Source: Paramicrosporidium saccamoebae KSL3 (taxonomy: Eukaryota > Fungi > Cryptomycota). From it: a stretch of DNA of 8,087 nucleotides. Numbering within the stretch: position 1 is the stretch's first letter; the number at the start of each line of letters is the position of its first letter. The translations under genes were made by a program, and so were the position numbers. Below the pieces are notes generated by a model. It had not been told where the DNA came from. It searched no databases and saw nothing but the letters and a program-made list of their open reading frames with translations. Location of the stretch: positions 1 to 8,087 of the forward strand of contig MTSL01000187.1 of the NCBI GenBank assembly GCA_002794465.1, in the 5' to 3' direction. Below, in pieces: positions 1 to 8,087 of this stretch.

Positions 1-3000
1 AGAGATTCCTGCTTGATGGGCAAAGTTGTTGTCAATTTCTTGACGAGATTAAAGTACTTGTCAGCGGAATTGCTGTCTCCAGCGCGAAGAATCCCTAAAT
101 GGCTCTCCAGCTCGTTAATCTTTTCTTTAGCACTATTCAGCTCGCGACTGGTATCCTCAAGGATTTGACTCTGCGATTGATTCGTCTCTAAAGATTTCTT
201 CAGATTGGCGAGAGAATGCTCCACTGCTTGACGGGCCCTCAGCAAACTGTCAATGGAAGGGTCCACTTTACGGACAATATTCCGTAAAGTACCCAGATCA
301 CTCTGCATCTTTTCATCAGAACCAGTGTCAATCCAAAGAGTCTCGGACAGATTTTTCTTGAACAAACTTAGTTGGCGTTTGATTTTTGCCAATTGGGAAT
401 TTTTGGCTTCCAAACCATCTCGCTCTTTGGTGATTTTGGTAATTTCCTCGTTGAGTAATTGGATTTGATCCTTTTGTTGGTCACCCTCCACGCCGTGTTC
501 TTTGGCCATATTCCGCAACTTTGACTCCAGCTCTCTGATCGTATCATTCAATAATACAACACTTGCCTCTTCGTTCTTCAAGCGTTTAGAAAGATGTTGA
601 TTATATTCGTACATGGCCTTTACTTCCTCCGAGAACACCTCGCGCGCTTTTTTCATCTCCTGAACCTTTTCTTCGTGTTCATCTTTGAGATCTTTGATTG
701 CCTTTGCGTGCTCTGCTAAACTCTTTTCTTTGTAGGCTGCGGCTTCTGCCTTGTGTTGGTCCAAGTTCTTCTTGGCAGTAGTCAGGTTTTGTTGAATAGA
801 CTCAATCTCTTCTTTCTGTAGTCTAATGGTCTCATTGAAATTCAGTAATTTTTCCTGGGCATCCAGGCGAGAAGTTTCAAGCTTCTCCGCCAAGCTCGTC
901 TTTTCTGCCTCAAGGACATTGATTGCTTCTTGATGTTGTTTTTGCATCGCATTAGTCATTTCAGCGTTATTTGACATGGTAGACTCCAAAGTTGCCTGGA
1001 GGTTCGTAAGGCTTTCCTTGCGAGTCATGCTCTCTTGTTTGGTGGCTTCAATTTCCTGCTTCTGTGCTTGAATGAGTGTCTCCTTCTCACTGACATTTCG
1101 TTCCACAGTCTGCAATTCTAATTTCAGCCTTTCAGACTCGTCTTTCAGTGATAGGATTTGTGTAGCATTCTGCTTGTTCAGCTCGTCATGCTGGGTTGAC
1201 AGAGTTTGGAGGGTATCCTCGAGATTGGATATCCTCTGCTCCTGCGCCAGAATCTCGGCCTCTTTCTCTGCAATAATCGCTCGAGCTTTCTCAGTTGTCA
1301 GTTCAGCCTCTTCATTCTTCCTCTTCAACGCTTCTAAATCTCTCTTCAGATTCTCCAATATGCCATTCTTCGTCTCTACCTCTTCTTGGAGGCTTTTTTG
1401 TGTCACCATTGCCGCCGTATACTCGCTCACATGTTTCGTGATTGCAACATTGCGCTCTTCTTTTTCTGCAGTTGTCAATGCTAATTTCTTCTCAGACTGC
1501 TCCAACGTTTGCCTCAATTCTTCTTTTGCCGTCTTCAGGTCCTTTGACTCTTCGAAATGCTCTCGGTGTTCCTTTTCCAATTGAGCTCTCAACTCTTGGA
1601 TCTGTCTTTGAAGTTCTGATGTTGCCGAGCAAGTCCCCTCGGCCCTTGTTTCAGCTTCTCTGGCCCTCTCGAGAGCCTGAGCCGTCTGTCTCTCAGACTC
1701 TGAAAGGCTTGCCAGTGTCGTGGTTTGTTCTAAACTAATCCTATTCTTTGCCCTCAATAACTCTGCTGATTCTTTATGACAAGCCTCAATGGTGGACTGT
1801 AGACTTTTGTTTTCACCCAAACGCGTCTGCAAAGATTTTTCCAACTCTTCCTTTGACGTTTCCAGCTTCTCCATCTCCGTGACACCTTCCTTGTACGAAT
1901 TAAGAACGCCCTTTAAAAGATCCTCACGAGTATAGTTTTCAACGACTGTTCCAGGATGGTTCTTTTGCACATACATCTGGACGATTGGTAGATAATCCTG
2001 CTTTAAAAAGATGTCCAGACGTTGCACCCACGAAAAGTTTTCACGCAAATTCGTGATTGTATCTAGGGCGTAATTTAGCCTCACCCGGTCCTTTGATACT
2101 TTCTTTTGTTTACCATCGTTCCCCTGAACTGCCGTTGCTTCTCCTTGATCTGTCACACCAAGAGCAGTCAATAACTTTTCCTTCGCGCTACGGAGGGCCT
2201 TGTTGGCAGACTGCAGCTTGGTTTTGTCTTTCAACAGCGCATCCGAAGATTGCTTCGATTCCTCGGCCTCCTTCTGACAAGATTGTAGCCTTCCATTCAC
2301 ATCGCCAATAGCAGTCTGTAGGTTTCGGTTCTCCTCCAAACATGTTTCTGAAGACTGCTTTAATTGTTCAATCTCTTCCTGGAAACGTTGTGCATCCTGT
2401 TCCGTCTTATCAGAAAGCTTTGCATACGCCGCTCCAAGTTCGTCAAAAAGAGCAGCTTTGGATTGCAATGCCTCCGAGTACGCCTGCATGTCAAGCTTGA
2501 AATGCTCGTCACGGGCCCTCCACTCCTCCTTATTCCTAGTGGAATAGTTGTGGATGGATTCACGAAGACCATTAATCTCTTGCTGAGCGCTCTTATATTG
2601 TCGATCCAACCCCTCAGATCTTAGCTTCCATAAATCGGCCTGTCTTACTAGCTCTTCCTCACGACCTTGATGTTGCTGGGATTCCTGATTCAACGCTTGC
2701 TGCAGTTGATTCAGTTGAAGACTAAGTGTACTGTTTTGACTACTCAAACTATTCTCAAGAGCTTGATGCCCCTCCAGTTTTAAATTCCACTCCTGGTTAT
2801 CCTGATTCCTCTGCTCTAGTGTTTGCTGCTCTTGGTGACGCAATCGTTGAGTCAACGCTTGATCAGAAGTACGCAATGATTCATTCTCCGCCTCTAGACG
2901 CGTCACTTCTTTTGTCAAGTTGGTATAAGCAGCTCTGATTCCTTGAAAGAGATCAGGCAATGGTACTTGTCCTGAATTAACTTTTTGCAAAAAATCTGGG

Positions 3001-4622
3001 CCCATCTCCTGAAAGGTAGCAAGATAACTCTGGAAAATGCTGTCACAATTACGATTTTCGGATTGCGCATTCACTCTAATCTGACCTAAACTTCCCACCA
3101 GAGTGTTGATCCAAATCCCAGGTGATACATATGGCCCACTGGTGTCAACTTGCTTCATGTAACCAATTTGCTGTTGAAATCTACTCAAGTACTCTCTAAG
3201 AGCTGGTGCATGTGGCCCGAAGAGATCAAGACCAGATTCTATCTCCTTAATCCGGTTGTCAGAACTTGAATAATCCCCCAAAAGCATCATGGCCTTGGAT
3301 TCGTAGTAAAGTTTAGCTAGCGTATATATGTTATCAGCAACGCCATTGACCAGTTTAGGGGCCACCTTAAAGGAGGAGACAATTTTCAAAAACCTATCCA
3401 GACTCCCATCACGTAAAAAGACGTTGGCTACGTGAAAGATTCCATACGTGGGATCTACCGATTCGGCTACATGTACTGCCAAAGGCCAATCGTCAGTGTC
3501 TCGGACAATTTTTAGAATTGTTCGCAAGGCATAGATCTTTGCGTGAAGCTCGGATGGCTTGGCTTGGATGATAATGTCAGTGATCTCTTGTAGGGCTGGA
3601 TCAACTGACCTTGTCCCCTTGTCCAAGCTTCCCAGCTGATTAGCAATGACTCCATTGTTAATCAAGCCCATCAGTTGGCTTTTCATGCACCCGCTATCAG
3701 ATTCGCAGTAATCAGTCAAGATGGTGGCTACAAAGTGGTGAACTAGGTAAGGATTCTCTGCAACCTGCCGGTTCTGTAAATGGCTACTTGCTGCCTGCAA
3801 AAATTTTGCTTTGGCAGTGTCACGATTGGCTTTATTTCCGGGATCAGAGCCCTGGAGTTGCCTCTGGAGGTTCTTGTAATAGTGATTCGTCTCACAAAAG
3901 TTGTGGTTCAATTGTTCGCAGATAGATAATAATACCCCAGTATAATTAAAATTAGAGTCGTTTGCGGCAAGTTGCGCCAATCTGGGTTCTAATGCTTCAA
4001 TGATATCCATGCTGTCAAAATCGTACAAGATGAATTCACGATAGCTCAGGTTTTGGAAGTATCTCAATTTATCTGAATTATTGCTAAGCGCCTCTTTCTG
4101 TCGTTTAAAAAGGTCAAGGTAAGTCTGACGGTACTTTGTGGGAGGGAGACTAGTGATAAACGCCTCAATTTGTGAAATTTCAAAGCCCTCCCCACTGGTG
4201 CTCCTCGCAAAGGGTGTTTGATCAGGAGAAATATCAAAGACCTGAGATTCATACTCTTTAAAAATTTGGTCATCCATTTTCCATCCAAATAACGAGATGA
4301 TTCGACGGACGACAAACGGATAGGCGCTATCCTCGATCAACTGAACAACAAGACTATGGTAATTGGGGGCTTTCTCCTTATTGTGCAAGAAATGCATGGC
4401 GGCAGCGTGCTTCAGCACTCGACATGAAGGATACTTTTGCATCAGCATGTAATGCGCACCCACAAAAGATGGATGTAGTGCCAATAAATCGGGACAGCAT
4501 TTTTGTACAAGCCCAATATCAGCAGTCTCGGAAGCATTATAGAAAACTCTACAAGTATCATCGCTTTGACTTGCCCGAGTCCACCCCACAATGACCGCAA
4601 GGAAAAGGGCCAAGACTCTCAT
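1..4622 (-). CDS. Large putatively secreted coiled-coil protein of unknown family, at least 1540 aa, 3'-truncated by the window edge
   Basis: Hand translation of the minus frame with codons at 3k..3k+2 shows no stop from the ATG at 4622-4620 to position 3. An in-frame TAA lies 4 codons upstream of the ATG. Starts MRVLALFLAVIVGWTRASQSDDTCRVFYNASE and leaves the window at ...KYFNLVKKLTTTLPIKQES. Residues ~1-560 are non-repetitive and Cys-containing; from ~562 (IRAAYTNLTKEVTRLEAENESL, near 2939) the sequence is E/K/Q/L-rich with heptad character. Probably absent from the ORF track because its stop is outside the window. The function is not recognised. Confidence 0.92.
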   Translation of the reverse strand, partial: MRVLALFLAVIVGWTRASQSDDTCRVFYNASETADIGLVQKCCPDLLALHPSFVGAHYMLMQKYPSCRVLKHAAAMHFLHNKEKAPNYHSLVVQLIEDSAYPFVVRRIISLFGWKMDDQIFKEYESQVFDISPDQTPFARSTSGEGFEISQIEAFITSLPPTKYRQTYLDLFKRQKEALSNNSDKLRYFQNLSYREFILYDFDSMDIIEALEPRLAQLAANDSNFNYTGVLLSICEQLNHNFCETNHYYKNLQRQLQGSDPGNKANRDTAKAKFLQAASSHLQNRQVAENPYLVHHFVATILTDYCESDSGCMKSQLMGLINNGVIANQLGSLDKGTRSVDPALQEITDIIIQAKPSELHAKIYALRTILKIVRDTDDWPLAVHVAESVDPTYGIFHVANVFLRDGSLDRFLKIVSSFKVAPKLVNGVADNIYTLAKLYYESKAMMLLGDYSSSDNRIKEIESGLDLFGPHAPALREYLSRFQQQIGYMKQVDTSGPYVSPGIWINTLVGSLGQIRVNAQSENRNCDSIFQSYLATFQEMGPDFLQKVNSGQVPLPDLFQGIRAAYTNLTKEVTRLEAENESLRTSDQALTQRLRHQEQQTLEQRNQDNQEWNLKLEGHQALENSLSSQNSTLSLQLNQLQQALNQESQQHQGREEELVRQADLWKLRSEGLDRQYKSAQQEINGLRESIHNYSTRNKEEWRARDEHFKLDMQAYSEALQSKAALFDELGAAYAKLSDKTEQDAQRFQEEIEQLKQSSETCLEENRNLQTAIGDVNGRLQSCQKEAEESKQSSDALLKDKTKLQSANKALRSAKEKLLTALGVTDQGEATAVQGNDGKQKKVSKDRVRLNYALDTITNLRENFSWVQRLDIFLKQDYLPIVQMYVQKNHPGTVVENYTREDLLKGVLNSYKEGVTEMEKLETSKEELEKSLQTRLGENKSLQSTIEACHKESAELLRAKNRISLEQTTTLASLSESERQTAQALERAREAETRAEGTCSATSELQRQIQELRAQLEKEHREHFEESKDLKTAKEELRQTLEQSEKKLALTTAEKEERNVAITKHVSEYTAAMVTQKSLQEEVETKNGILENLKRDLEALKRKNEEAELTTEKARAIIAEKEAEILAQEQRISNLEDTLQTLSTQHDELNKQNATQILSLKDESERLKLELQTVERNVSEKETLIQAQKQEIEATKQESMTRKESLTNLQATLESTMSNNAEMTNAMQKQHQEAINVLEAEKTSLAEKLETSRLDAQEKLLNFNETIRLQKEEIESIQQNLTTAKKNLDQHKAEAAAYKEKSLAEHAKAIKDLKDEHEEKVQEMKKAREVFSEEVKAMYEYNQHLSKRLKNEEASVVLLNDTIRELESKLRNMAKEHGVEGDQQKDQIQLLNEEITKITKERDGLEAKNSQLAKIKRQLSLFKKNLSETLWIDTGSDEKMQSDLGTLRNIVRKVDPSIDSLLRARQAVEHSLANLKKSLETNQSQSQILEDTSRELNSAKEKINELESHLGILRAGDSNSADKYFNLVKKLTTTLPIKQES
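4572..4622 (-). other. Predicted signal peptide (residues 1-17) of the large ORF
   Basis: MR (basic n-region), VLALFLAVIVG (hydrophobic h-region), WTRA with small residues at -3/-1, followed by polar SQSDD. Judged by eye, not by a predictor. Confidence 0.8.
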
Positions 4623-4783
4623 GACTTGTGATTATGAATAGGATTGAATGGTGCCCACTTAAGAACCCATCTGACGCCAATTGGTTTCCCTCGGACCAAT
4701 CTCGACACGCAGAAATAATACTGTGCCAATCGAAAGTATCCACGATGACTTGCTATTGGTGCAGTGATTACCCAGTCTGCCAT
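4619..4783 (-). other. 54-aa upstream ORF whose stop overlaps the large ORF start (ATGA)
   Basis: ATG at 4783-4781, MADWVITAPIASHRGYFRLAQYYFCVSRLVRGKPIGVRWVLKWAPFNPIHNHKS, TGA at 4621-4619 within gtcATGAga. The ORF is seen directly; whether it is translated is unknown. Confidence 0.2.
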
Positions 4784-4790
4784 AACCAAT
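4677..4790. promoter_or_regulatory. Cluster of CCAAT boxes (NF-Y/HAP-type) upstream of the large ORF
   Basis: CCAATTGG palindrome 4677-4684, CCAAT 4696-4700, CCAAT 4726-4730, ATTGG 4755-4759, CCAAT 4786-4790. Further copies at 4908-4912 and 5024-5028. Confidence 0.6.
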
Positions 4791-4792
4791 GA

Positions 4793-5008
4793 CTAGACGT
4801 TGTATTTGTGCACGAGAGAATTATAATTAAAGCACGTGGCGCCTTTATAGGCCACCACCCTCAACACACCGGATTGCGGGATAGCATAGATATCCAGGTT
4901 GGGGCCGCCAATCATGAGCGGATAGCACTTAATCGACGTATATAATAGACAGACAGGAGGCTTATAAGGCGCCACGAGATTTATAGTCAAAGAGGAGTCC
5001 TGGTCCAT
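4793..5008 (-). other. 71-aa intergenic ORF, probably non-coding
   Basis: From the ORF track (MDQDSSLTINLVAPYKPP...). ATG start, no recognisable motif, overlaps putative promoter elements. Same frame as the 4619-4783 ORF. Confidence 0.12.
4835..4976. repeat. Inverted repeat pair of a TATA-like plus GGCGCCACG module
   Basis: Left arm 4835-4853 CGTGGCGCCTTTATAGGCC; reverse complement of right arm 4959-4976 is CGTGGCGCCTT-ATAAGCC. 11 bp are perfect, 17 of 19 positions match with one gap. Confidence 0.7.
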
Positions 5009-5099
5009 AGATAGTAGTATTAGATTGGATCTACTCGTTTACATTAATCACCAAATCAGTCTCCTTGTTTTTACACTATGCACGATTCTATTTAAAAAA

Positions 5100-7625
5100 T
5101 TACTCGGTCTCTGTGGTACCATATCCTCCCACCTCTGTAGCAACATGTCCCTCCGCCTTGCTAGCAACATGTTCCTCCGCCTTGCTAGTAACATGACCCT
5201 CCGTCTCGATAGTAATATGACCCTCTGTCTCGGGAGCAAATTTTTCGGATGCAGGAACAAAGGACATTTCAGATGCATATTTGGCCTGCACCGCACGCTT
5301 CACTCTCAGCATGTCACGGAAGGTCGTCTCAGTGCCATGGCGCGTCTCAAATTCTTGCCAGGCAGCCCAGAGAGCAGGGAAACGACGTGGATCACATGCA
5401 GAGGAGGCGTGGGCGTAGATTGCCCGAGCACGCTCCACCTCCCCGAGACTCGTTTCCAAAGTCGCATAGCGGAGAGACATGGACACTGATTCGGAAAGCC
5501 CCGTGATGGAGGCGATTGCATCTTCAAAGACGGATCGTTGCGCTGTAATGCCCAAACTTTGTTGCGTCTTGGAAAGAAGAAGATCAAATAACGTGGTCCG
5601 CTGGTCCTCAGAGACAGCATGGGCCGCCCGTTCAAGGATCCTCAGTGCGTTTCGGGCAGATCCATATTGTTCCTCCATCCGGGCGTATTCAATGTATATG
5701 GAAGAGCACAGGGACGCTGGACATCCCTGCAGAGCTTGTTCAAACACATCCCGGATTCGTTCAATGCTTCCCTTTGGCCCATAATGGCTAACAAATTTTG
5801 GCAAATAAATGTTCCAAATCTCAAAAGAAACGGGATAACCAAAAGCAGAAATGCCCCTTTCGTACACTTTAAAGGACGCGTCCTCGGTAGTATCTGCATG
5901 AGTCTCCAAAAATGCAGCATAATTGATGATATTTTGAGGTGTCATTATCCCCAAATCCATCATACGGTCATATGCAGCGAGTGTGGGGTCTAAAAGACCT
6001 CGGGCCTCTTCCAGATCCACGTAAAAATTCCAAAGCTTCAAGTTCTTGAATAGATATCGACGCGGATTGTCAGAATCCTTAGCCTTTCCAGATGGCGGTA
6101 CTAATGCCTCGGCCAACAGATCCAAGGCTGCAGGAATTCCTTGTTGACGTACCGCCATTTCCCCAAAGGCAATCCAAACAGAAGCAATTTCATCCACATT
6201 TGTAAAGTCTGCTTCGGTTGCGCGTCTCAGTACCTCAGTTGCCTCTTTATGCTTCTCTAAAGTTTCTAAGAAACGAGCATAGCTGATCCATAGGCTGGAA
6301 AGTGATCCCTTGGCACGTTGAAAATGAATGCTCTTGAGAGCATCTTCATAAACGTCAGTTACCTCTTCTCTTTTGTGTTCCTGGAACAAAGCAATGCGCT
6401 CCATCCAAATGGCCACATTGTTGGGCTGCTGTCTCACCCGGACATTTGAAAGAAGGAATGGGCGCCTCTCCAGCAACGCTTCAAACTGCTCCATTCTCCT
6501 GTCCAAATCATCCCCCTTTGCATCCGTTTTAGCCTTTTTGCGGCTTCGACGGTCTAGCTCAATGGCAATGATACTTTCCTCCATCTTTGAAAATGCATCA
6601 AAGACGAGCGAAAAATCACGAACAGTCGGGACGCTGATAATAGCTTCCTCATAAACGGCACGAGCCTCTTGGATCCTTCTGCTCCGAATATGCCACATGG
6701 CCAACGCATTCCAAAATAGTCCAGTAGCATGAATTGGGCCGTCCATATTCCGTCGTTGTTGCAAGGTACTAAAGTTGGACCGCTCCATGGCCTTCTCAAT
6801 GGCGGATCTCAGGACTGTCTCTATTGGAGTCGCCTTGATAGCTGCACCGTGCTGGCTTACTATGCGACACAATTCTTGCCAATACTGTCCTGGCATGATT
6901 TCGTCGTCATCTACAGCCTCTCCACTCAGAGACGGAGGCTCATTCTGTGCCAGTTCCACTAGCAACGAGGCAGCATCGTCGTAAAACTGACAGCGAAGGA
7001 GACATCCAACATGTCTGGCCGCTATTTTGGGGTCACTGCGGTCCGCTGTCACTCGCCAATAGCGTGACCAAATCTCTGCAGCAGTGCGTGGTACGAAAAG
7101 CTCTATGGCACCTGCAAATTTGAGGTACAGGGACCAAATACGCTCGTGGAGAGAAAAAGGCAATGCTCTCAATGCTCTGTCGAATGTCGTACGGGTCGCA
7201 GTGATACGACGCTGTCGCATCAAAAATGACGCATAATCAAGCCACAGACGCGGCATGTAGGGAAGGTTAGAGAGTGCCCGCTCATAGCCGTCATTTATGG
7301 AGGAAAATTCAGTGGCAAGCATGCCAATAATGACCGGTGTGCGCTCTTCCGAATTATCGCGGTAAAGTTGTAAGAGACGTGTCATGCGTTCAACACGCTC
7401 GTCCAAGTACAGCTTCCATACTTTGTAGCTCAAGGGTAGCAAAACCAAAGTTCTCTCATATACAAAATTACGACCAATAGCCTCGTCAAGGAGACTGACA
7501 ATTCTAACTGAATCTGAAATCTGATGGCGCTCACGAAGGTACTGAAGCCATTTTTTTGCCGAATATGGGTCCCTCAAAAGCTCCTCTTCGTATGAAAAGT
7601 CTCCTTCAGAAATCAGAGAATCCAT
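5100..7625 (-). CDS. SYF1: Pre-mRNA splicing factor SYF1/XAB2 (HAT/TPR-repeat scaffold of the Prp19/NTC complex), 841 aa, no introns needed
   Basis: Recognisable Syf1 motifs: N-terminal YEEELLRDPYSAKKWLQYL, YERTLVLLPLSYKVWKLYL, MPRLWLDYASFL, TRTTFDRALRALP, HERIWSLYL, ARAVYEEAIISVPTVRDFSLVFDAF, RRPFLLSNVRVRQQPNNVAIW, LKLWNFYVDLEE, YDRMMDLGIMTPQNIINYAAFLE, SFKVYERGISAFGYP, IERIRDVFEQAL, GEVERARAIY, WQEFETRHG, DMLRVKRAVQAKY. Confidence 0.96.
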   Translation of the reverse strand: MDSLISEGDFSYEEELLRDPYSAKKWLQYLRERHQISDSVRIVSLLDEAIGRNFVYERTLVLLPLSYKVWKLYLDERVERMTRLLQLYRDNSEERTPVIIGMLATEFSSINDGYERALSNLPYMPRLWLDYASFLMRQRRITATRTTFDRALRALPFSLHERIWSLYLKFAGAIELFVPRTAAEIWSRYWRVTADRSDPKIAARHVGCLLRCQFYDDAASLLVELAQNEPPSLSGEAVDDDEIMPGQYWQELCRIVSQHGAAIKATPIETVLRSAIEKAMERSNFSTLQQRRNMDGPIHATGLFWNALAMWHIRSRRIQEARAVYEEAIISVPTVRDFSLVFDAFSKMEESIIAIELDRRSRKKAKTDAKGDDLDRRMEQFEALLERRPFLLSNVRVRQQPNNVAIWMERIALFQEHKREEVTDVYEDALKSIHFQRAKGSLSSLWISYARFLETLEKHKEATEVLRRATEADFTNVDEIASVWIAFGEMAVRQQGIPAALDLLAEALVPPSGKAKDSDNPRRYLFKNLKLWNFYVDLEEARGLLDPTLAAYDRMMDLGIMTPQNIINYAAFLETHADTTEDASFKVYERGISAFGYPVSFEIWNIYLPKFVSHYGPKGSIERIRDVFEQALQGCPASLCSSIYIEYARMEEQYGSARNALRILERAAHAVSEDQRTTLFDLLLSKTQQSLGITAQRSVFEDAIASITGLSESVSMSLRYATLETSLGEVERARAIYAHASSACDPRRFPALWAAWQEFETRHGTETTFRDMLRVKRAVQAKYASEMSFVPASEKFAPETEGHITIETEGHVTSKAEEHVASKAEGHVATEVGGYGTTETE
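5114..5233 (-). repeat. 24-bp in-frame coding minisatellite in the SYF1 C-terminal tail (4 good units plus 1 degenerate)
   Basis: Plus-strand units: 5138 tagcaacatgtccctccgccttgc, 5162 tagcaacatgttcctccgccttgc, 5186 tagtaacatgaccctccgtctcga, 5210 tagtaatatgaccctctgtctcgg; degenerate unit at 5114. Encodes ETEGHITI-ETEGHVTS-KAEEHVAS-KAEGHVAT-EVGGYGTT. Confidence 0.9.
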
Positions 7626-7677
7626 GACCAGGGAGTCGCCTGGCTGCAGTGCACTATTTGATAGTTCAACGGTGAAG

Positions 7678-7771
7678 AATCACAGCTGCTCAATCGTCCA
7701 CATTAGCTGCATCTTAATGACTCACAATCACAGCGGCTCAATAGACCACGTTCACAATGGCTCGATGGTAC
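7678..7771. repeat. Degenerate ~24-bp repeat upstream of SYF1
   Basis: aatcacagctgctcaatcgtccac (7678-7701) matches aatcacagcggctcaatagaccac (7726-7749) at 21 of 24 positions, 48 bp apart, with more diverged units at 7702 and 7750. Confidence 0.65.
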
Positions 7772-7947
7772 AATTACAGATCAGCTCCTCAACAATTACA
7801 AATCAACTCTTCAATAATTACAGACCAACTCTCCAACAATCACAGATTAACTCTTCAATAATTACAAATCAACTCTCCAACAATCACAGATTAACTCTTC
7901 AATAATTACAAATCAACTCTCCAATAATAACTACAGCTCCCCCTAAT
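7772..7947. repeat. 22-bp minisatellite, 7 good units plus 1 degenerate
   Basis: Units start at 7772, 7794, 7816, 7838, 7860, 7882, 7904 and 7926 (degenerate); consensus AAT(T/C)ACA(G/A)AT(C/T)AACTCT(T/C)CAA(T/C). Units 4 and 6 are identical; units 5 and 7 differ only at the last base. Confidence 0.93.
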
Positions 7948-7950
7948 AAT

Positions 7951-7956
7951 AAAAAA
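7951..7956 (-). terminator. RNA polymerase III terminator (T6)
   Basis: TTTTTT on the minus strand, 2 nt after the tRNA-Lys 3' end. Confidence 0.85.
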
Positions 7957-7958
7957 GT

Positions 7959-8031
7959 CGCCCAGCGTGGGGCTCGAACCCACGACATTGAGATTAAGAG
8001 TCTCACGCTCTACCGACTGAGCTAGCCGGGC
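7959..8031 (-). tRNA. tRNA-Lys(CTT): tRNA-Lys, anticodon CTT, 73 nt, no intron, no encoded CCA
   Basis: GCCCGGCTAGCTCAGTCGGTAGAGCGTGAGACTCTTAATCTCAATGTCGTGGGTTCGAGCCCCACGCTGGGCG. Acceptor stem GCCCGGC/GCTGGGC, anticodon arm TGAGA-CTCTTAA-TCTCA, T arm GTGGG-TTCGAGC-CCCAC. Closely resembles the canonical eukaryotic cytosolic Lys-CTT sequence. Confidence 0.97.
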
Positions 8032-8036
8032 AAACT

Positions 8037-8087
8037 TGCAAGTTCCGGGAATCGAACCCGGGTCTACCGCGTGGCAGGCGGCAATTA
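8037..8087 (-). tRNA. tRNA-Gly(GCC): tRNA-Gly, anticodon GCC, 5' part beyond the window
   Basis: Minus strand reads TAATTGCCGCCTGCCACGCGGTAGACCCGGGTTCGATTCCCGGAACTTGCA. Anticodon arm GCCGC-CTGCCAC-GCGGT, T arm CCGGG-TTCGATT-CCCGG, 3' acceptor strand AACTTGC plus discriminator A at 8037. Confidence 0.92.

Follow-up and report, generated by a model that had tools for sequence, protein, structure and literature searches.

What kind of protein is encoded by the very long open reading frame (ORF) that runs off one end of contig MTSL01000187.1 in the genome of Paramicrosporidium saccamoebae KSL3, and in which compartment of the cell would that protein act? We address this question in a window of 8,087 nucleotides, positions 1 to 8,087 of the forward strand of the contig. 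The record MTSL00000000 is the genome of P. saccamoebae, a member of the Rozellomycota (PMC5701793), so that a guess of this group in the original prediction, made from the letters of the DNA alone, was right. P. saccamoebae lives in the nucleus of Saccamoeba and its spores have a polar filament (PMC5701793). Hidden Markov models (HMMs) of microsporidian polar-filament proteins nonetheless find nothing in its proteome, a result that the authors of the genome attribute to rapid evolution, and they leave open whether this filament arose only once (PMC5701793). Here we report that the ORF is a real, native, single-exon gene of P. saccamoebae, and that its giant product joins a leader-bearing head to a very long jointed coiled coil as predicted from its sequence, an unusual design. 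This product is best read as a rapidly evolving, fibrous protein that follows the secretory pathway.

The reality of the gene is supported by its frame and by its composition. The coding sequence starts at an ATG at 4622-4620 on the minus strand and remains open down to base 3 (3..4622, minus strand), giving codons 1-1540 of a partial gene whose 3' end is absent, the contig ending at window base 1. Translation of this interval contains no stop, which confirms the stop-free frame of at least 1540 codons noticed at first reading. Each of the remaining five frames of the same DNA holds 63-122 stops, and, at the local base composition, a run of 1540 stop-free codons has a chance probability of about 1e-42. 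Three codons 5' of the ATG there is an in-frame TAA. The GC content at third codon positions (GC3) is 0.473 in the giant gene and 0.475 in the neighbouring Syf1 gene, and relative synonymous codon usage (RSCU) in the two is correlated with r 0.57; because GC3 and codon usage match those of Syf1, the giant gene is native to its surroundings. The product has a mass of at least 174 kDa, and its visible part contains 13 cysteines in total.

To call this gene hidden, as was done at first, was an overstatement. It was missing from the list of ORFs supplied with the sequence because that list leaves out ORFs running off their source, and the public assembly GCA_002794465.1 already contains an identical 1540-aa partial model on MTSL01000187.1, made of the 4620 bases at the start of the contig, reaching the first base of the record and annotated as a partial hypothetical protein. 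The missing C-terminus is therefore a loss in the assembly and not an effect of the window edge, and the suggestion that it be recovered by extending the contig leftwards fails, since nothing lies further left in the record. The right edge of the window adjoins a scaffold gap of 10 N.

The protein begins with a signal-peptide-like leader (codons 1-17, MRVLALFLAVIVGWTRA; 4572..4622, minus strand), followed by SQSDD. By inspection, the n-region of the leader is basic, its hydrophobic core counts 12 residues, and Thr and Ala occupy -3 and -1 of a putative cleavage site after Ala17, an arrangement that fits the n/h/c organization and the -3/-1 rule and is in line with the signal peptide originally claimed. 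In 8-residue hydropathy the N-terminus ranks 2/59 among the long ORFs of all fetched loci, and the ORFs ranked near it are signal-peptide-like as well. The 12-residue core is too short to anchor the protein in a membrane, and the charges on either side of it favour translocation of what lies C-terminal to it. Kyte-Doolittle means over 19 residues do not rise above 1.25 in the visible 1540 residues, the N-terminus itself reaching 1.23, in agreement with the earlier statement that no obvious transmembrane stretch is present. The 19 N-X-S/T sequons counted by eye are indeed there. Their enrichment is however marginal (composition shuffles give 11.4 +/- 3.2, p ~0.018) and the counterpart described below has only two, so that N-glycosylation was downgraded as evidence for secretion; glycosylation is not discussed in the P. 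saccamoebae genome paper (PMC5701793). Taken by itself, entry of the giant protein into the secretory pathway appears rather probable.

Most of the visible protein is a heptad-rich tail (residues 562-1540; 3..2939, minus strand), rich in E, K, Q and L, with four prolines (0.4 %), four cysteines, a pI of 5.5 and a visible mass of ~112 kDa. By the heptad score, a crude home-made proxy distinct from COILS or Marcoil, 84 % of residues 562-1540 lie above the 99th percentile of the shuffles, compared with 1 % of residues 1-561. The onset of this signal at residue 557 confirms the heptad-like sequence reported from residue ~562 onwards. An AlphaFold single-sequence model of the tail as a monomer is ~89 % helical (mean pLDDT, the predicted local distance difference test, 58; predicted template modelling score, pTM, 0.26) and consists of ~16 helices parted by short breaks, the longest spanning residues 563-736, 1224-1375 and 1111-1212. 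The largest interruption covers residues 821-898 (1929..2162, minus strand), where breaks in the AlphaFold helices and a drop in the heptad score coincide: a 24-residue non-helical linker rich in Gly, Gln and Lys is followed by two short helices with Pro879 and Pro890. Helix breaks fall at tail positions 260-283, 314-316 and 328-337, with pLDDT values of 29-50, and the heptad score falls at residues 823-838 and 870-902.

Sustained heptad periodicity is thus found together with predicted helix, as in the structural class of long coiled-coil fibrous proteins. Of the rod first proposed, the long heptad-rich tail stands, whereas the single continuous coil of 980 aa does not, given the ~16 helices predicted. 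Because the model contains ~16 helices and not one, the suggested rod length of 130-145 nm is an upper bound for a fully stretched tail; the longest unbroken element, a predicted helix of ~174 aa, corresponds to ~26 nm. The ~15 breaks in the modelled helices would permit the tail to fold back, and the long helices of the model would match any coiled coil. The giant gene has no internal repeats by self-BLASTP and Tandem Repeats Finder, and a word-indexed search of 5.8 billion proteins with the tail, at E<=1e-6, returned only the tail itself.

Between leader and tail lies a head of ~545 aa (residues 18-561; 2940..4571, minus strand) with an ordinary globular composition, a mass of ~61.5 kDa and a pI of 5.9. 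Its nine cysteines include the close pairs 42/43, 235/243 and 306/312. The head is predicted to be all-helical and is not heptad-like. Its AlphaFold single-sequence model is all-alpha and unreliable (pLDDT 41.8), and was set aside as unusable for structure comparison. Against Pfam the head gives nothing at E<=0.1 and no more than a chance-level match at E<=10; it has no match among PDB sequences or in the 5.8-billion word-indexed protein search, and an exhaustive phmmer search against 1.84 billion representatives recovered only the giant protein itself. For the whole protein, Pfam likewise gives nothing at E<=0.1 and, at E<=10, only chance-level matches to ApoA-II and DUF2576, with no TPR match in the head even at that threshold. 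The head is thus as unrecognised as it had seemed, and the match to a cytosolic or golgin family that would have spoken against a secreted protein was looked for in Pfam and PDB sequences and was not found. A metagenome scan with the whole protein found no relative.

A counterpart was reached through gene order instead. Seven distinct loci from relatives were compared around Syf1. The order in P. saccamoebae is SGF29, ribosomal S5, transaldolase, Sec1, Syf1 and the giant gene, and the part upstream of the giant gene is kept in two of the seven loci, L001 and L007, in L007 as SGF29, transaldolase, Sec1 and Syf1. L007 is an environmental sequence (Logan SRR28204433; GC 58 %) whose Syf1 is 48 % identical. 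Directly downstream of this Syf1, on the same strand, lies a complete ORF of 1790 aa (L007:8797-14169) that has no Pfam match above threshold. No comparable ORF stands beside Syf1 in L001, L004, L006, L008, L010 or L012; in L001, where Syf1 is 59 % identical, a Ras GTPase comes next. A tblastn search of L001-L004 with the giant protein gave nothing.

BLASTP finds almost nothing in common between the giant protein and the L007 ORF. A Smith-Waterman alignment of the two heads nevertheless reaches 78, where shuffles give 36.9 +/- 4.8 (Z 8.5; shuffles that keep local composition give Z 7.1), while the controls are clean: head against tail gives Z ~0, and the reversed sequence scores 30. The sole significantly similar stretch is residues 357-419 (3366..3554, minus strand), which align with L007 residues 355-425, equally far from the N-terminus in both proteins, with a phmmer domain E of 2e-4. 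The L007 side of this match resembles a TPR hairpin, though weakly, with a sub-threshold TPR_4 match at 400-424 (E 0.004; 17.9 bits against a cut-off of 27). Alignment of the heads with hhalign runs collinearly through 494 columns with an identity of 26 % (P 0.0017, compared with 0.88 for the reversed control), at an hhalign probability for the pair of 15 %. Coil-like sequence first appears at residue 557 in the giant protein and at 567 in the L007 ORF. The L007 N-terminus, MFTPGPAMAMLLVLHLPPAWS, ranks 5/59 in hydropathy, and both N-termini are in the top 10 % of the 59 ORFs. After its leader the complete L007 ORF has no hydrophobic segment and no HDEL/KDEL, and it ends in ...CNLNMLVC, Cys-rich and soluble-looking.

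Two regions of the L007 ORF are distinctive in themselves. The last ~150 residues (L007:13700-14166) are Cys-rich and contain the Pro/Leu motifs IPPEELAAM, LTSPQLSALPPERL and DWFDWSSLS, and residues ~1340-1440 form a low-complexity stretch rich in Gly, Ser and Pro; neither has a Pfam match. Homology of the two tails was considered and rejected: most of the Smith-Waterman excess disappeared against reversed and block-permuted controls, and hhalign did no better than its control. An 'L-x-x-L-G' knuckle motif, seen by eye in both tails, was dropped when a count of the pattern did not confirm it.

Collinear similarity and a shared genomic position are thus found together, with a significant core of ~65 residues. 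The two proteins form a proposed lineage-restricted family with two known members, outside described families. We consider common descent of the two likely, and the L007 ORF is a probable, very divergent positional orthologue. Should the pair be orthologous, the Paramicrosporidium copy may lack ~250 residues or more, and the complete protein would be without a membrane segment or an ER-retention signal (ER, endoplasmic reticulum). A metagenome scan with the alignment of the two heads found no relative.

A soluble secretory protein is favoured because the L007 counterpart has a leader and neither a transmembrane segment nor HDEL/KDEL. The closely paired cysteines of the giant protein's head also speak for the secretory route. 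We propose that the leader would be cleaved as a signal peptide, and that the whole protein would pass into the ER lumen and be exported in soluble form. The tail would pair with itself or with a partner, forming a two- or three-stranded jointed coiled-coil fibre assembled in the secretory pathway, and the head would be its binding end. Such a fibre could serve as a structural scaffold or tether in an extracytoplasmic assembly built in secretory compartments, such as the polar filament, its anchoring apparatus or the spore wall, in a role akin to that thought for PTP3 in microsporidia, without homology to PTP3. This assignment is the most economical, because the spore wall and the polar filament are known extracytoplasmic structures and the polar-filament HMMs found nothing; it is tentative, the scaffold or tether role being possible and somewhat short of probable.

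A number of observations weigh against this proposal. As for the family, the closer relatives L001 and L004 carry different genes downstream of Syf1, head similarity beyond residues 357-419 is not significant alone (Z<1), and the tails share only coiled-coil background (hhalign P 0.35, the same as with the reversed sequence; Smith-Waterman 161 against 132 reversed). The sole significant match to L007 is TPR-like, and TPR-like hairpins can match by convergence, without common descent. The L007 ORF could then be unrelated and the giant protein a species-specific orphan, with the shared position and the TPR-like match coincidental. This concerns the family and not the function, and finds support in a similarity limited to ~65 residues, in the low hhalign probability, in the dissimilar tails and in the absence of a giant gene at that position from L001, which is closer by Syf1. 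We regard it as unlikely, since the agreement extends to position, strand, length of the head, onset of the coil, the hydrophobic N-terminus and the 494-column collinearity, and shuffle and reversal controls are clean. As for the function, very long coiled coils, those of a thousand residues included, are mostly cytosolic, and a TPR-like helical head is a typical mark of a cytosolic scaffold. The L007 leader is without a basic n-region and holds prolines, and the sequons are not conserved, with 19 in the giant protein and two in its counterpart. These points lead to the main rival of the secreted fibre: a long coiled-coil protein of the cytosol. It might be a tether resembling the golgins, a scaffold associated with the spindle pole or the nuclear envelope, or a linker of the cytoskeleton, and its hydrophobic N-terminus would then reflect chance, a wrongly called start or a helix that binds membranes peripherally. 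The all-helical head, possibly a TPR-like solenoid according to the model, agrees with this, as does a start of the giant gene left putative by an upstream ORF (uORF) of 54 codons and an undefined transcription start. The first ATG, however, comes only three codons after an in-frame stop, a hydrophobic N-terminus within the top 10 % is kept in two highly divergent proteins, the charges around the hydrophobic core speak for translocation of the part C-terminal to it, and no Pfam match to Uso1/p115, GRIP, GRAB, myosin, kinesin or SMC domains is found. We hold a cytosolic protein to be doubtful, though it is the most serious of the rival functions.

Two further readings accept secretion and differ in what follows it. 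The same leader and hydropathy rank would suit an effector secreted into the nucleus of the host amoeba, where a fibre with a binding head would organize host nuclear structures, or tether them, around the parasite; the parasite grows inside the host nucleus (PMC5701793), and extreme divergence suits proteins at a host interface. A fibrous protein of at least 174 kDa would be unusual as an effector, however, and nothing sets it apart from one with a structural role in the spore, so that we see little probability in this reading. Since the C-terminus is lost from the contig, a terminal anchor may also be present in P. saccamoebae. The protein would then be a type I membrane protein or an adhesin stalk, with a transmembrane helix or a glycosylphosphatidylinositol (GPI) signal in the missing C-terminus and the head held ~100 nm off the surface. 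A leader followed by a long tail and a missing end is compatible with this, head-and-stalk adhesins are a known design, and either kind of anchoring, type I or GPI, would place an N-terminal head at the distal end, as fits. Yet no transmembrane helix or GPI signal is found in the visible 1540 aa or in the complete L007 counterpart, which has no hydrophobic segment after its leader and a Cys-rich, soluble-looking end; of the functions considered, a surface stalk is the least probable.

A soluble secreted fibre of this kind would matter for the origin of an invasion organelle. Paramicrosporidium has a polar filament, and none of the known microsporidian polar-tube genes has been found in it; the giant protein is a concrete candidate bearing on what this filament consists of, and how it arose, outside Microsporidia. 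If it is located in the filament or in the anchoring disc, work on the origin of that organelle could begin at the molecular level, and as a part of the polar filament it would either represent, diverged beyond recognition, the ancestral type of a PTP3-like scaffold or have been arrived at independently. That the giant protein and its L007 counterpart are the first polar-filament or anchoring components identified outside canonical Microsporidia is nonetheless a long shot. Were the protein cytosolic, it would be another lineage-specific coiled-coil protein of modest interest. The syntenic and nearly unrecognisable L007 counterpart shows how fast such proteins escape homology searches.

The rest of the window lies upstream of the giant gene. 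The spacer between the Syf1 stop and the giant-gene ATG (4623..5099, minus strand) presumably holds the promoter and 5' untranslated region (UTR) of the giant gene and contains TATAA boxes, an inverted repeat and the uORF. The latter (4619-4783, minus strand; 54 codons) ends in a TGA that overlaps the giant-gene ATG as ATGA, and a 3-codon mini-ORF (MGS*) lies upstream of the giant gene in the main frame; both matter only if the 5' UTR extends over them. The 18-nt inverted repeat (4828-4845/4966-4983) has arms that are 89 % complementary, 120 nt apart and share a GGCGCC core. Each arm adjoins a TATAA motif and the 4828-4845 arm has a CACGTG E-box; from its sequence, the repeat may be a promoter element.

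Syf1 itself, a splicing factor of 841 aa, occupies 5100-7625 (minus strand; Pfam E 3.5e-132). A neighbour-joining tree of Syf1 places the window sequence with ten environmental sequences in one clade inside Fungi. A 24-bp tandem repeat inside the 3' end of the gene (5138-5225, minus strand; 3.7 copies, 87 % matches) encodes the 8-residue units ETEGHITI, ETEGHVTS, KAEEHVAS and KAEGHVAT, a lineage-specific C-terminal extension of Syf1. Between the Syf1 start codon and a tRNA-Lys gene, a 22-bp unit occurs ~7 times (7770-7928; alternatively 44-bp x 3.6, 91 % matches). The tRNA-Lys(CUU) gene (7957-8032, minus strand; ARAGORN, Rfam 67.9 bits) separates Sec1 from Syf1, and directly upstream of it is the 3' half of an apparent tRNA-Gly(GCC) gene (8035-8087, minus strand), whose 5' half is lost in the 10-N gap just beyond the window. 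The public model fuses Sec1 and Syf1 into one product of 1447 aa (5100-8087 / L005:4541-9523) across the tRNA gene and a tandem repeat, while in the DNA they are separate ORFs of 592 aa and 841 aa; because of this fusion the 841-aa Syf1 has no protein record. Other loci of the environmental clade hold ORFs of 450-730 aa without a Pfam match (L008:4027-6216, 9455-11392 and 11500-13659, and L010:422-1771, all minus strand). Signal-peptide-like N-termini are clear in two of them, of 719 aa (L008) and 449 aa (L010), and these Pfam-less ORFs may be further secreted orphans of the lineage.

How does the giant protein compare with known long coiled-coil proteins? Laminin chains, EMILIN/multimerin and fibrinogen have a signal peptide, a globular N-terminal region and a coiled coil that oligomerises in the secretory pathway, and laminin and EMILIN show that long coiled coils do occur extracellularly. 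The giant protein resembles them in its signal-peptide-like leader, N-terminal head and coiled coil of hundreds of residues, but it has no LN, EGF, EMI, gC1q or fibrinogen C domain at Pfam E<=10, belongs to a fungal lineage, and has a tail that is jointed and about twice as long. In overall shape the nearest proteins are Uso1/p115. These and the golgins have a helical-repeat head of ~550-700 aa and then ~1000 aa of coiled coil, without a signal peptide; unlike them, the giant protein has a leader, and their Pfam head and targeting domains are not detected in it. Kinectin and the ribosome-binding protein p180 likewise combine a hydrophobic N-terminus with a very long coiled coil, but there the hydrophobic segment is a full-length transmembrane helix and the coil lies in the cytosol, whereas the giant protein has a 12-residue core, a cleavage-type site of small residues, acidic residues and a 545-aa head before the coil.

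The comparison with the polar tube protein PTP3, raised in the original prediction, is unsupported as homology: neither phmmer (1.84 billion representatives), nor the word-indexed searches, nor the polar-filament HMMs of the genome authors detect it, and the database searches showed no similarity to PTP3 or to any other protein. PTP3 is large (1219-1284 aa; 1256 aa for ECU11_1440 of E. cuniculi), self-interacting and a proposed scaffold of the polar tube, and it reportedly has a signal peptide. The giant protein is longer, at no fewer than 1540 aa, and has 13 cysteines, while PTP3 is extracted by sodium dodecyl sulfate (SDS) without a reducing agent, a difference that leaves membership in the PTP3 family unsupported. 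Both are large proteins from parasites of the Rozellomycota-Microsporidia lineage that make a polar filament, and both belong to a class evolving too fast for detection across lineages. By analogy, PTP3 would be the nearest functional counterpart of the giant protein among known systems.

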